Shown in pieces: positions 23,337 to 49,729 of a stretch of 64,000 bases of DNA. The first letter of the stretch is position 1. Every line of letters begins with the position of its first letter. Origin of the DNA: Lytechinus pictus (Eukaryota); NCBI RefSeq assembly GCF_037042905.1, contig NC_087258.1:23622001-23686000 (forward strand). The letters run 5' to 3'. The notes under the pieces are model-generated. The model did not search any database and was not told where the DNA came from. It saw only the letters and a program-made list of their open reading frames with translations. Position numbers and translations under genes: made by a program.

Positions 23337-26300
23337 ATGATAGAAGGCCTGAATATGGTTCGTCTTCCCTGGTTGGTCTTTATTCTGCAAGGTAAGGATA
23401 TGTCCATTTATACTTTCAAGTAAGACGTAATTAAGAACAGCATTTCTTTCCAGAACCTGACCTAGAACTTTGTGTGGTTTGTTTTGGCTTCATTTTCCGT
23501 ATCAAAATGAAAGCAATACTAATCTTCCAAAAATGTTTTCAACTTCTTATTCTTATTGTAAGTTTGAATGTAATTCAATCCCAATAAATATCATGGAACA
23601 TTGTAGTAATTCAGGAAAAAACAAATTGAAATTGCAGACCATTACTCTTGATTCGAGAAGTAAAACGTGACATTCATAAATGGTTTATTTCCTTTATGCA
23701 TCGAACCCTGGTTACAGCCACAGAAAACTATAACTTTCAAATTTCGAAAATTTCTTAAAGGTCAAGTCCACCCCAGAATAATGTTGATTTGAATAAATAG
23801 AGAAAAATCAACCAAGCATAACACTGAAAATTTCATCAAAACCGGATGTGTGTGTATTTGAGTTTTGTCAGACGTGTATCAATCAGATATGATTATTTAC
23901 GTCTGGGACCGACCTTTAACGTCACCATCCGAAAGACGTGACCAGGGCTCGAACCTCTGCATCAATTTGTAACTTCCCCGCATAGCTTGGATTACAGGCG
24001 CACGCCACAACGCCCAGTTGTAAAATAAGGAAGTTTTTACATTTGAAAGTTTCGCTTTTTTCACAACAGTTATATGCACAACCAAGTGATAATTAATAGA
24101 GTCAATGATGTCCCTCACTCACTATTCGTTTTGCTTTTTATTGTTTGAATTATACAATATATTTTTTACGATGTTACAATAAGTACCAACTTGACTGAAC
24201 CATAAAATGTTATAAATCTACATGTTCAGGGAGGCACAAATCTTTGTTTTCACATGACAATGAGGAGAAAATGAAAATATTTATTTTCGTAAAATACAAA
24301 AGAAATAGTGAGTGGGTGACGTCATCATTCAACTCATTTGCATACCAACCATGATGTGCATATAACTGTTTTGTGAAATTCAGTGAAACAAAACTAAATA
24401 TCATAACTTTCCTATTTTACATCCGATTTTGATGAAATTTTCAGTGTACAGTTATGCTCGTTGGATTTTTCTCTTTGTATTCGAATCAATTTTTTTTGCT
24501 GTGGTGGACTTGCCTTTATAAGCAATCATTCAGCTTATGATTAAGGAAAATTCCACGATATAGTCTGCTATATACAGGTTTGCTCGAACATCATTATGCA
24601 AACTTGGAAGCTGAAAACCCCCACCCCAGTATTAAAGGAACCACCGACGACGCCAAAGGCCGAAAAAAACTGTTTTCTACTGTTTTTGTGATGTGTTACC
24701 CCCCCCCCTCCCCCTCCCTCTCCCCGTGCGTGCTGGGACATGATCGTATCTTCATTGCTGGTATGCTTTACGATTGTTTCTCCTGTCTTTCTCAGGTTTC
24801 CTGCTAAATGTAAGTTCTTCAAGTGCAGAAGAAGGTAAGTGCAAACTGTCAATGTAACTTACTGTGTAAGCAGGGCTGGGGGATACAGGGTCTGGGGCAA
24901 AAGTGATTATCGCGTCCCATTCTTCATTACCTTTCATCAAATTAAACTATCAATTTAATTTCTTTTGTTATTCCCCTTTTTTTTACCTTACCATCTCTCC
25001 CTCTCCTCTCTCTTTCTCCACTTGTCACTTTTGACCCTGTTCATGCAGCCCCTGAAAGTTGGGGCTAGACCCAAGGACTTTATCCCCTCTGTATAAACTG
25101 CTGATTAGGCAGCTAAGTTGGCTAAAAGAAGTAGATCTCGATGCATTAATAGGGCCTACCTGGGAGGGATGTTTGTCAGTGGGTGTGCGTGTGAATGTAC
25201 GAGAAATGAATCTGGGTTAAGGGTGGGTGGTTGTGACAGGTCGAGGGTGGGTCCTATATGGGTGGGTGGGTCTGTAGTGGCTGAGTGTGAGTGGGTGGTG
25301 GGTGTGAGAGATGGGAGGGTGCGCTGTATATGGATGGCTTAAGGGTGGGTATGATAGGTCTAGGGTGGGTCTGTAGTGGCTGAGTGTGAGTGGGTGGTGG
25401 TGTGAGAGATGATCGAGGGTGCGCTGTTTATGGATGGGTTAAGGATGGGTGAGTATGATAGGTCTAGGGTTGGTCCAATATGGGTAGGTGGGTTTGTAGT
25501 GGCTCAGTGTGTGATAGATCGAGGGTGGGGCTAGGATGGGTGAGTGTGATAGATATGAGGGTAGGTTTAGGGTGGGTAGGTGTGAGAGATGGGAGGGTGT
25601 GCAGTGTATCGGTGGGTTAAGGGTGGGTGCATGATAGATCGAGGTTGGGTCCAATATGGGTGGTCTTGAGTGGGTGAATGTGATAGATATGAGGATAGGT
25701 TTAGGGTGGGTGTGAGAGATGGGAGGGTGAGCAGTATGTGGGTGGGTTGAGGGTGGGTATGATAGATCGAGGGTGGGTCCTATGTGGGTGGTCTTGAGTG
25801 GGTGAGTATGATAGATATGAGGGTGGGTTTAGTGTGGGTGGGTGTGAGAGATAGGAGGGTGTGCAGTGTATGGATAGGTTAAGGGTGGGTGAGTATGATA
25901 GGTCGAGGGAGTCTATGGTGGGTGAGTGTGATATATATGAGTGTGGGTGGGTGTGAGAGATGGGAGGGTGTGCTGTATATGGGTGGCTTTGTAGTGGCTC
26001 AGCGTGATAGATCGATGGTGGTGCTGGGCGAGTGAGTGTGATAGATATGAGGATGGGTGGGTGTGAGAGTATGTGCAGTATATGGTTGGGTTAAGGGTGG
26101 GTGAGTATGATAGAGCGAGAGTGGGTCTACATGGGTGAGTGCGATAGATATGAGGGTAGGCTGGGTGAGTGTGAGAAATTTATTGTTCTAAGAATGTTGT
26201 CATAAATCAAGATGTCTTGTACGTATTCGAAAAAAAAAAAGACTAGGCGACTAGGATATTTCAGTACATCCTTCATAAATTTGAAAATATTCAGATAGGA

Positions 26301-43688: not shown

Positions 43689-43973
43689 TAATAATAATAA
43701 TATAGGATATTTATATTGCGCACATATCCACCATGTCCACCTTGTTAGGTGCTCAAGGCGCTCCTATATTACCCGGCTAAGCTAGGCGTTCATAGCGCAC
43801 ACAGCTTTCTAAGGAATTACTTCCTACCGGTACCCATTTACCTCACCTGGGTTGAGTGCAGCACACTGTGGATCAGTTTCTTGCTGAAGGAAATTACGCC
43901 ATGGCTGGGATTCGAACCCACGACCCTCTGTTTCAAAGTCCGAAGACTAATCCACTGGGCCACAACGCTCCAC
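43689..43973 (-). mobile_element. tRNA-derived SINE
   Basis: A box TGGCCCAGTGG, B box GGTTCGAATCC, (TAT)n tail; nearly identical to 56654-56933. Confidence 0.9.
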
Positions 43974-43979
43974 GTTTAT

Positions 43980-44143
43980 AGACGTGTATCAATCAGATAT
44001 GAGTATTTACATGTGGGACCGATCCCTATCGTCACCATTTGAAAGACTAAACCCAGGGTTCGAACCTCGAACCTTTGCATCAATTTGTAACAGGCCGGGT
44101 AACAGGTAGCTTGGATGACAGGCACACGCCACAACGCCCAGTT
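43980..44143 (-). mobile_element. 7SL-like-headed SINE, copy 2
   Basis: Same 5' end (AACTGGGCGTTGTGGCGTGTGCCTGTCATCCAAGCTAC) and body as 23849-24019, diverged; a 3' fragment also lies at ~48560-48675. Confidence 0.75.
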
Positions 44144-47226: not shown

Positions 47227-49729
47227 ACATGACTACACATGTAGATAATGAATTAACTCAATGACAAATCCAGAGGGTAGAACAGTTTTTGAAGAAGATT
47301 TGTAGCTAAATTATTAACTATTTCTGGAACATATTACACACAATTCTCCCGTTTTCATCATACCGTTATTCACTTTAAAGCCATTTTCCGTTTGTTTTGG
47401 TGATTTTACCAAGTTATTAAATGTTTCTATCAATAATAATTGAATGTTCTTGGCGAACCTGAACATTACTCTTGGTTCAGACTTGGTAATATGTAACAGG
47501 AAATAACATATACAAATTCGCCTAATATATAAAGGCAGTCACAAAATTTATTTATCTTAACCATTTCTTGTTATACTTTAATTTCAATTGAGAGAAAATA
47601 TACAGGTTATCAGGATATCAGGAGAAAACTGACAACTCCCAAATTCCTTCTGACATGTTGGAACAGGCAATATTTGAATAATATGGGAATTGCACAGTAA
47701 ACTAATTATTTTTGTCTTCAAATTTGGCTACCAGGGTACTGTCATTAAATTGTAGTCCTTCTCCTTCTTCTTCATCTTCTTCTTCTTTTATTCTCCTCAT
47801 CCTCCTTCATCTCCTTGTTCTTCTTTTTTTCTTCTTCTCCTTTTTAAATCTTTTCCCTTTTCTTCGTCTTGTTATCATCATTAATAGATCATTTATATTA
47901 TTTGAATCATGTTTATCCAATAAGTCCAAAGTATTTCAAAAGAAAAAAGTATACAAGTACACACGTTTACAAGTATTTCATATCCTTTTCTGGTTTAGAA
48001 ATATCTTAGTCAAGGTGATTATATGCAAAAACATGTTTTGTGTAATTTACTAGAGAATAAATTGAAAGTCTCTTATCTTTAAACGAATTTATTTATTTTT
48101 TAACCGAACAATGTAGAGCAAAAAGAACAAATGTTTTTTAAGTTGATATAATTGAAGTATACGGAGCAAAATTTGTTTGAATCGGGGTTTGAAGATGATG
48201 TAAGTTTTTTTTTGCTGTTTTGGATTGTAGTTCAGTTCGCAAGAGTTACCTATTTCATATTTGTTATTTGCTTTCAACATGTTCAATACTGAAAAAAAAC
48301 CTCAAAATTGTATCTCATGATAATTTTCAAATAAAATACGCAGTATACATTTTAACAGGATAGGTTTGGAAAAAAAGACAATTTTATCGACTCAATGATG
48401 ATGATGAGAGAGAGAGAGGGGGGGGGGGGGTAGAGAGTGTGTGTTTGTGAAGTGGAGGGACGGAGAGAGAGGGAGAGGGAGAAAAGGGAGAAAGAGAGAT
48501 GTAGGGTAGAAATTAAGGAAATAAGAGGGGAAGTGATAGGAGATAATTGTTATTTATTGTGTTTGTGCGTATGTGTGCGTGTGTAATCGAATCTTTACAG
48601 GGTCATACCAATCAGCTGTAATCATGTACGTCTGGGACCGATCTTTGTTAAATTCAACATCCGAAATACGTGACACAGTGTCCAAATTAATTTCCCATGA
48701 TGATTTCAGAGTGTTATTAATTTTGCAACAAAACTCATACATACATCATGTACAGGTAGGCTTACTTCTTTCCATAAAGGCGAGCTTGGAAGAAGAATCA
48801 AACAATTTTTTTTTTATTATCGTGCAATTTCCTTCCGTTTTTCCCCCGTTTTTACTGTAGGCATACTAATGTCAATATCTTTTAATACCGCAGACTGGAC
48901 ATGAGGCCTCGGTTGGTATCACTAAAGAGAGAAAATCAATCCTCGATAATTATTTCTTAGCTCTATGAGGTTTGTTTCTCTCGTCTTCCTCTTGTAAGTT
49001 CTTCTAGCTGGAAAGTTACAATGGCAGAGGTTAACCACTACAAGCTTGAAACGATCGATCGAACTAACAATCGATATCACGCATTGTCTGCCCCTTCGAC
49101 ATACATTGTTAAAGCATATCAATGGAGTGGCAGAAATCAGCGAAATCTTTTAATTGAAGTGATATTACGTTTTTAAAATCGAACATCCCCTGCTTCATTT
49201 CAAATGCCGAAATTGATTGAGAAATAATACATCATGGAAAGTTGTTGTTTTATTCTACTTTGTTGCTATTTTCACGTGTTTATTTAATTACAGATATATC
49301 TAAGGCTTGGTATTACCTTATTAAGCAAAAACATTCGATTCTCACTCCCCTGGGAGGGGAAAAGGATAGGTCTCAGAATGACATTTCATTTACTAAACAT
49401 CTATTAAAATATGTACATCAACAAGATGAAAATGATATTGAATATACAAACCAGTGACGTAACAAAATTGTGAGGGAGTCAGTCAGCCTTTTGAGGGAAA
49501 TATATACATTTTTATATAAATATATAAAAAATCGATCTCTTTAGTAAAAAATCTAATTTAGTGATAAATTTTGACATATTATTAACAAATAATTTTGTGT
49601 TTCGCCTCTTTTTTTTTCTTTTTAGTTGTGAAACTTTTGAGATATAGTTTATTAAAAAATGTTCTACCAAGAACTAACACTATTGGATTTACAACTGATT
49701 AAGTGCATTAGTTATTTCTTGCTGCAAAC

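Follow-up and report, generated by a model that had tools for sequence, protein, structure and literature searches.

The window analyzed here, 64,000 nucleotides of the sea urchin Lytechinus pictus (NCBI RefSeq assembly GCF_037042905.1, contig NC_087258.1, positions 23,622,001 to 23,686,000), carries on its minus strand two copies of a short interspersed element (SINE) whose 5′ head derives from 7SL RNA, the RNA found in the signal recognition particle (SRP). Copy 1 runs from 24019 down to 23847 and starts with AACTGGGCG; its 173 bp include a (CA)5 tail and one extra 5′ A, so that its 5′ end can be set at 24019 or 24018. A first-pass annotation of the same DNA had placed the element at 23849-24019; it does lie there, on the minus strand, but the (CA)n tail reaches 2 nt further, to 23847. 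The sharp borders of this ~170-bp element were borne out by direct reading and by its flanks, both of which are repeats with more than 1,000 first-look candidates each. The two flanks are directly contiguous at C18:24830629-24830851, another copy of the flanking repeat and hence an empty site, indicating that copy 1 inserted cleanly into a different repeat, with an overlap or duplication of 0-1 bp relative to that site. Copy 2, reported to share the 5′ end of copy 1, indeed begins at 44143 with the same nine bases; it has lost its tail at ~43980, where a tRNA-derived SINE adjoins. Coordinates of all features are collected in the table. The observation is confirmed. We put the probability that this is a 7SL-derived SINE, a composite element born independently in a sea-urchin lineage and very recently, perhaps still, active, at roughly 0.9.

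Table. Parts of the 7SL-headed SINE and related features of the window (positions count from the first letter of the window)
Feature	Position	Strand	Basis
Full 7SL-headed SINE (copy 1), youngest subfamily	23847..24019	-	direct reading; 35 identical genomic copies; flanks contiguous elsewhere
Head, host 7SL nt 1 to ~48, SRP Alu 5′ domain (helices 2, 3 and 4, loops L2 and L1.2, UGUAAU turn)	23972..24018	-	RF00017; 31/31 identity; shared variants
A-box-like segment TGGCGTGCGCC, inherited from the 7SL gene	23997..24007	-	direct reading; located where 7SL and Alu have their A box
Linker TACAAATTGATGCAGA, non-7SL	23956..23971	-	7SL homology ends at its start (alignment to seven host 7SL genes)
B box GGTTCGAGCCC of RNA polymerase III (Pol III) type, fitting the consensus GGTTCGANNCC	23945..23955	-	direct reading
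Core hairpin GGTCAC-GTCTTTCGGATG-GTGAC, then GTTAAA	23915..23943	-	core common to a host tRNA-derived SINE family
3′ stem-loop AGACGUAAAU-AAUCAUAUCUGAUU-GAUACACGUCU	23870..23904	-	predicted in both the minimum-free-energy and the centroid fold
Tail GACAAAACTCAAATA(CA)n	23847..23869	-	CA repeat number varies from ~3 to ~13 (96 copies)
Second, older copy (copy 2), ~80% identical	43980..44143	-	same 5′ end; duplicated B-box region; RF00017, 20.2 bits
Unrelated tRNA-derived SINE adjoining copy 2, outside the 7SL-headed family	43780..43972	-	sequence read; weak tRNA-type Rfam match at 43897-43967
Diverged, old fragment lacking the 7SL head; core the same, tail (CA)n-like but degenerate	48606..48674	-	~80% identity to element positions 78-143

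A covariance search of the element against Rfam, run at a permissive threshold, returned Metazoa_SRP (RF00017) as the best match, covering model positions 1-44 of the copy 1 head (29.6 bits, E 3.6e-6) with the whole of helix 3 and the UGUAAU turn aligned; copies elsewhere in the genome score about 32-35 bits. With the same model, seven full-length 7SL genes (272-283 bits) were found in the host genome. Six of them start ACCGGGCG...CCAGCTAC(T)TTGGAGGTCGGGG, and the seventh, L007 on contig C12, starts ACTGGGCGTTGTGGCGTGCGCCTGTAATCCAGCTGCTTTGGAAGTCGGGG. Counted from its second base, the SINE is identical to L007 at 31/31 positions, and three states, ACT, GCTG and GGAAGT, are common to the SINE and L007 only among the seven genes, so that shared variants extend to nt ~48; older SINE subfamilies read ...CCAAGCTGTGGGGAAGT at the head in this comparison. 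The 7SL-derived head that the first-pass annotation had proposed is thereby upheld. Since it matches the host's own C12 paralog, the head originated independently of Alu and B1, also as proposed. A SINE-specific compensatory change in helix 2 was considered and rejected, because the ACU/AGU pairing, in which the SINE departs from most 7SL paralogs, is already present in L007.

The 7SL homology stops directly after GGAAGT (7SL position ~48), where the gene continues into CGGGGTTGG and the SINE into TACAAATTG. BLAST and alignment against the seven host genes revealed no 7SL 3′ segment in the element, BLAST matching only element positions 2-38, and the "helix 5" pairing in the RF00017 alignment of copy 2 is an artifact imposed by the model on unrelated sequence. 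Homology to 7SL places the U-turn CCUGUAAUCC, helices 3 and 4 and loops L2 and L1.2 in the element; the GGGCGU/GCGCCU helix and the UGUAAU turn, both singled out earlier, were read directly in the element. Full-length copies start A-ACTGGG, ACTGGG or CTGGG, at most 1-2 nt from the 7SL +1 position. Judged by these comparisons, the head is the complete SRP Alu 5′ domain copied from a host 7SL paralog, with nothing beyond it.

Downstream of the head, the internal B box said to have been added to it (GGTTCGAGCCC, 23955-23945) and the (CA)n tail were both confirmed by direct reading. The B box lies ~50 nt 3′ of the A-box-like TGGCGTGCGCC, the A box of 7SL itself being located at positions 6-15 (PMC7245038), and the region around it is duplicated by 7 bp in older subfamilies (GGTTCGAGGTTCGAGCCC). 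By inspection, the T-arm around the B box amounts to only 3 base pairs. Aligned locally with CGTCCCTCGGATGG-GACGTTAAA from a host tRNA-derived SINE, the core CGTCTTTCGGATGGTGACGTTAAA agrees at 21/24 positions, a score reached by 0/500 shuffles, and the tRNA-SINE core occurs at least 567 times in the host genome; the body of the 7SL-headed SINE thus carries a core common to host SINE2 elements. The 24-nt shared stretch reads CGTC..TCGGATGG(T)GACGTTAAA in the tRNA-SINE family, whose core contains CTCGGATAGGACGTTAAATGGAGGCCCCGTGT; this family differs from the 7SL-headed one in that its head is tRNA-like and has A and B boxes of its own, its body is much longer and its tail is A/T-rich, and in lacking the 3′ stem-loop and the (CA)n tail. 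On sequence grounds, a core shared in this way fits a conserved SINE body of the Nin/Deu type. That identification is tentative: a Nin-DC/Deu pattern gave 0 matches in the genome, and sequence strings looked for in the literature turned up nothing but primers. Genome matches to a degenerate core pattern were mostly, perhaps only, mutated copies of the 7SL-headed family itself. The element ends in the stem-loop, which is presumed to be the recognition structure for the reverse transcriptase of a partner long interspersed element (LINE), followed by AAACTCAAATA(CA)n, and contains no internal T4 run or terminator.

The tRNA-SINE used in this core alignment comes from locus L110 (C15:5832212-5832704, minus strand), where a ~400-bp tRNA-derived SINE is nested in the tail of a 7SL-headed copy. 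It has the head GGTGTTGGCTCAGTCGGTAACGCG...GGTTCGAGTCC, the core CTCGGAT(A/G)GGACGTTAAATGGAGGCCCCGTGT, common to the 7SL-headed family, and an A/T-rich tail.

Pattern searches of the 812-Mb host genome, allowing up to 2 mismatches, gave 1,191 matches for the head (33 nt), 1,418 for the body (33 nt) and 1,305 for the tail (31 nt), spread over all large contigs, while the reversed patterns used as controls gave 0, so chance cannot explain the similarity. The SINE is therefore a large family of ~1,200-1,400 near-exact copies and not just the two copies of the window; a first look with a covariance model suggested as many as ~6,000 candidates. Of the other copies, 35 show 100% identity with copy 1 over 169-171 bp. 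Among 96 sampled copies the junction from 7SL to the linker at TACAAATTG is invariant, and the structure is uniform with the S domain deleted, excluding a plain 7SL retrocopy. Target duplications range from 0 to 14 bp, with 5-14 bp in many copies and clear cases at L011, L018, L038, L075, L008, L059 and L074. Truncation at the 5′ end is common and recurs at GTCTTTCGG, and the truncated copies L046 and L088 have duplications of their own. Subfamilies differ in the helix-4 loop (GCTGTGGGG, GCTATGTGGGG or GCTATGCGGGG) and in the duplication of the B-box region, and their diagnostic changes have propagated across many copies. The family thus displays the hallmarks of SINE retroposition, being dispersed and multicopy with target duplications, a variable 3′ repeat tail and 5′ truncations, and it appears young, very recently and perhaps still active. 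Some copies form head-to-tail arrays, such as one at C18:3952125-3953138 with six units that differ in age.

At locus L068 (C1:22736300-22744435), four exact body matches (C1:22736811, 22739348, 22741879 and 22744403) recur with a period of ~2.5 kb, showing that the SINE is there embedded in a larger tandem repeat unit.

Insertion strongly favors certain sites. Seventeen SINE copies share a single 3′ junction, in which (CA)n is followed directly by CACTTCACTAGGTGGTACGTAC, at the site CTCTTCTTGCAC^TTCACTAGG, and the same site was found empty 116 times. These 17 insertions are independent, since their 5′ junctions, truncation points and subfamilies differ. A second hot spot, CGGCCTGCA^AAAGAACCGATC, is occupied eight or nine times. 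Target-primed reverse transcription that begins at a sequence-preferring first nick would leave such a pattern of fixed 3′ and variable 5′ junctions. The (CA)n tail could pair with ...AAGTG-3′, the end of the bottom strand at the first site. At L109, L097 and L089 the very same nucleotide of the first site is occupied by another, unrelated element, whose tail is (AAG)n.

The repeat that contains the first hot spot (CTCTTCTTGCAC^TTCACTAGGTGGTACGTAC) is mostly present in inverted pairs, spaced by a few hundred bp, that resemble the arms of foldback elements or of miniature inverted-repeat transposable elements; occupied examples lie at C1:1208421, C7:599618 and C20:16084740 (loci L096-L108), and empty ones at C2:16068126/16068374. 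At the second hot spot, L090 (C2:47763949-47764531) contains an inverted partial SINE tail GTGTGTATTTGAGTTTTGTC joined to AAAACTCAAAT and followed by (GT)n and (AC)n, which looks like the product of twin-priming or a template jump. Two differently 5′-truncated SINEs, L082 and L084 (C2:45738370 and C2:53140517), are inserted at the same position of a repeat with TATAAATAGCGGAGTTTCGCAGTGAT^CTCGTCACTTCG, which looks like the TATA box and transcription start of a multicopy gene.

To account for the family, we propose that a 47-48 nt 5′ piece of one host 7SL paralog was joined to the linker, B box, SINE core, 3′ stem-loop and (CA)n. Pol III would start at the 7SL +1 nucleotide, at ACUGGGCG, using the 7SL A-box-like segment together with the acquired B box ~50 nt downstream, and would terminate in flanking T-runs, since the element has no T4 terminator of its own. 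The head would then fold like the SRP Alu 5′ domain and recruit SRP9/14, bringing the RNA to ribosomes that translate a LINE, whose stringent-type reverse transcriptase would recognize the 3′ stem-loop and (CA)n and copy the RNA into nicked DNA in a target-primed reaction. Anatomy, 7SL origin, source paralog, amplification and the marks of retroposition were observed directly; Pol III transcription, SRP9/14 binding and recognition by a LINE are what we infer from sequence. By analogy the SRP9/14-dependent mechanism is plausible, because a 46-nt 5′ Alu domain was reported to be both required and enough for association with SRP9/14 and for retrotransposition (PMC11760393) and because the host genome contains an SRP14 exon.

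Several results weigh against this mechanism. The element lacks the 3′ strand of the Alu domain, which every other 7SL SINE retains, so SRP9/14 binding may be weaker or irrelevant and the head may be a promoter only. SRP9 was not detected by an exon-wise Pfam search of the genome, which is uninformative for a small intron-split gene. Although the head is predicted to fold into two hairpins, its predicted folding energy is no better than that of shuffled sequence (z +0.26, and -0.38 for the whole element), so the structure rests on 7SL homology and not on thermodynamics. The run listings contained no direct evidence of a discrete Pol III transcript: the complete SINE body and tail were found in libraries under three organism codes (A, B and C) as well as in libraries presumed to be RNA, no indexed library with the SINE is on record as RNA, and Pol II transcripts with embedded copies would give the same signal. 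These occurrences are neither proof of Pol III transcripts nor of a dated phylogenetic spread. Finally, a partner LINE with a matching 3′ end, for which the first-pass annotation had suggested looking, was found neither with tail patterns or forced mismatches in the genome nor at the hot spots.

Tail matches (1,305) are not in excess over body (1,418) and head (1,191) matches, leaving no surplus of tail-only elements; at 40 places where the body or tail was exact but the head was not, the element proved in each case to be a SINE copy from another subfamily or a 5′-truncated copy with unrelated sequence upstream. A pattern with forced mismatches upstream of the tail gave one match, a SINE copy with a 2-bp insertion, and every (CA)n-adjacent element at the two hot spots was a 7SL-headed SINE. 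L094/L110 was considered as a second family with the same terminal tail and rejected, the element being the tRNA-derived SINE nested in a 7SL-SINE tail. Approximately 150 reverse-transcriptase loci are listed in the host genome, with open frames of up to about 1,300 aa.

The main rival to SRP9/14 docking holds that the head is only a Pol III promoter and start-site module, its 7SL A-box region acting together with the acquired B box, and that the LINE recognizes the 3′ stem-loop and (CA)n alone, in the manner of common tRNA-derived SINEs. We regard it as unlikely, though a serious contender. A canonical B box was needed, as selection for a promoter predicts; stringent-type LINEs recognize 3′ tails without ribosome docking (PMC7245038); the 3′ half of the Alu domain is missing; and the H4 loop region varies between subfamilies. 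However, a promoter needs only ~25 nt, whereas the end of the kept piece coincides exactly with the 3′ limit of the Alu 5′ domain (7SL nt ~48), and its 47-48 nt compare with the 46 nt of the minimal SRP9/14-binding and retrotransposition domain of Alu (PMC11760393). In addition, all subfamilies sampled, from the oldest to the youngest, have the U-turn and both loops unchanged.

Independent births of 7SL SINEs are described as extremely rare and, in the supraprimates, the hagfish and, since 2026, the shrew mole, all concern vertebrates (PMC13023118, PMC7245038). Kojima in 2020 knew well-defined SINE1 elements only from Euarchontoglires and hagfish (PMC7245038), and the 2026 report in BMC Biology that adds the shrew mole likewise counts no 7SL SINE before it outside supraprimates and hagfish (PMC13023118). 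Alu, B1, Tu, Urop and Ebu1-1 all keep both 7SL ends after a central deletion of ~183 nt (PMC13023118, PMC7245038). The sea-urchin SINE lacks this combination of 5′ and 3′ Alu-domain segments, found in every described SINE1; from its sequence it is a SINE1 by origin of the head, yet without both Alu-domain halves of the known members. Full-text searches of the open literature returned no report of a 7SL SINE in a sea urchin or other echinoderm, Repbase, Dfam and SINEBase lying outside that search. We consider it probable that the family is undescribed, an invertebrate SINE1 that evolved independently and has a new architecture. The fuller claim, that it is the first invertebrate 7SL SINE and the fourth independent birth after Euarchontoglires, hagfish and shrew mole, pared to a ~47-nt minimal SRP9/14-binding module, is advanced tentatively and at slightly less than even odds.

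That the family is real and 7SL-derived but already catalogued, for instance among the sea-urchin entries of Repbase or Dfam as a SINE2 or unclassified repeat, so that at most its 7SL origin went unrecognized, seems rather improbable. Many sea-urchin SINE families have appeared in Repbase Reports from 2005 onward (references in PMC4758252), but the 2020 publication, written by a Repbase curator, the 2026 paper and the full-text literature all speak against a catalogued 7SL SINE in this group.

The closest known parallel is SINE1-1_EBu (Ebu1-1) of the hagfish Eptatretus burgeri (PMC7245038). It too is an independent 7SL-headed birth outside placental mammals and a composite of a 7SL head with parts of other retroposons, is mobilized, or presumed to be mobilized, by a stringent non-L1 LINE, has a microsatellite-type tail, and reaches a similar copy number in the low thousands (2,363 in hagfish). 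However, Ebu1-1 keeps 5′ and 3′ parts of 7SL around an internal S-domain deletion, whereas the sea-urchin SINE keeps only nt 1 to ~48; its tail is a bipartite RTE sequence with (AAC)n (PMC13023118) in place of a stem-loop with (CA)n; and in the sea-urchin SINE a canonical B box and a SINE core domain have been added. The Euarchontoglires elements Alu, B1, FLAM and pB1 and the shrew-mole Urop (PMC13023118) share with it a 7SL 5′ head with the A-box region, helices 3 and 4 and the U-turn, and a 5′ end at the 7SL +1 position. In contrast to the sea-urchin SINE, they retain the 7SL 3′ end after the central ~183 nt deletion, carry poly(A) tails, use L1 without a 3′ recognition sequence and have a B box that arose within 7SL sequence; the sea-urchin SINE, which is invertebrate and monomeric, had a tRNA-type B box joined to it. 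Modules of 7SL and tRNA-SINE likewise coexist in the tree shrew Tu types and bushbaby GarnAlu (PMC7245038), but these descend from the single Euarchontoglires SINE1 ancestor with a complete Alu-like monomer, and not from a host 7SL 5′ domain alone. The 46-nt 5′ Alu domain of Moldovan, Yin & Moran (PMC11760393) is close in extent to the sea-urchin head (nt 1-47/48); it is an engineered human construct with a Pol II promoter and L1, whereas the sea-urchin SINE is natural and of Pol III type, with another LINE system and a predicted binding.

Two further readings can be set aside. In the first, the element is a tRNA-derived SINE (SINE2) whose 7SL likeness arose by chance or convergence. Its tRNA-type B box, the core common to a tRNA-derived SINE and a start, GGGCGTTGTGG, superficially like the start GGAGCGTTGTGG of the neighboring tRNA-SINE could be cited in its favor. 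It is nevertheless highly improbable: ARAGORN found no tRNA in the window and no tRNA-clan Rfam model matched the element at E up to 10, while the SRP model matched (E 3.6e-6) and a host 7SL gene shares the 31-nt identical run and paralog-specific variants over 48 nt. A tRNA origin of the head is thus rejected by the tRNA-model, SRP-model and host 7SL comparisons alike, and a closer resemblance to a host tRNA or 5S gene than to 7SL, which the first-pass annotation had named among the refuting outcomes, was not found. In the second, repeated independent template switches of LINE or SINE RNA onto 7SL RNA, akin to U6-L1 chimeras, produced the copies without any self-propagating family; chimeric small-RNA retrocopies are known (PMC7245038), but the same breakpoint and linker in every sampled copy, the spread of diagnostic subfamily changes across many copies, and the position of the 7SL part at the 5′ end (with a template switch during reverse transcription, copying of 7SL would begin at the 3′ end, and a 3′ part is then expected too) make this scarcely credible.

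Should docking through SRP9/14 prove true, it would be a general way to capture a LINE reverse transcriptase, even that of a stringent, tail-recognizing and site-preferring non-L1 LINE. The echinoderm case extends 7SL SINE births to invertebrate deuterostomes, and its architecture differs: of 7SL only the 5′ domain is present, joined by a canonical B box that was acquired, a SINE core that is conserved and a (CA)n tail after a stem-loop. Because the kept 7SL piece is so close in extent to the 46-nt domain, the family is a natural replicate of the Alu domain experiment (PMC11760393) and a test of docking for SINEs that depend on a LINE 3′ structure. With its dozens of identical copies and its hot spots precise to the nucleotide, the family appears to be still active, and the sea urchin is a classical embryological model in which Pol III transcription, SRP9/14 binding and new insertions are directly testable. 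Unless recognized, the family will be mislabeled as Alu-like contamination or as a tRNA-SINE.

Further observations concern the surroundings of the SINE copies and of the 7SL genes. The tRNA-derived SINE that adjoins and truncates copy 2 belongs to another family (GGAGCGTTGTGGCCCAGTGGATTAGTC...GGGTTCGAATCCCAGCC...), with further members in the window at ~56708 (+) and ~20082 (-). The sequence upstream of the diverged fragment at 48606-48674 had no other copy in the host genome. On C10, three tandem 7SL genes (7.91-7.92 Mb) are each accompanied by an old SINE copy of 80-88% identity in the same orientation, ending ~35 bp upstream of 7SL +1 (L001:1289-1459, L005:1293-1463 and L006:1314-1463); these copies probably represent one old insertion duplicated together with the gene unit. 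L001 has a second old copy further upstream (876-1046).

Six of the seven host 7SL genes, L001 (1798-1870), L005, L006 (C10), L003, L004 and L002 (C1) but not L007 (C12), carry a tRNA-type B box GGTTCGAGTCC/T located 15-45 nt 3′ of the T-run terminator and followed by GGTGTC and a second T-run. This box suggested itself as the source of the SINE B-box segment. That origin may hold but drew no support from the similarity of the flanks, whose scores were 3-10 versus 9 for an unrelated tRNA-SINE (9 controls). The arrangement resembles that of yeast U6 with its downstream B box, and from its sequence the box may represent either a TFIIIC site of sea-urchin 7SL genes that is external to the gene or a piece of some other element that has been conserved.

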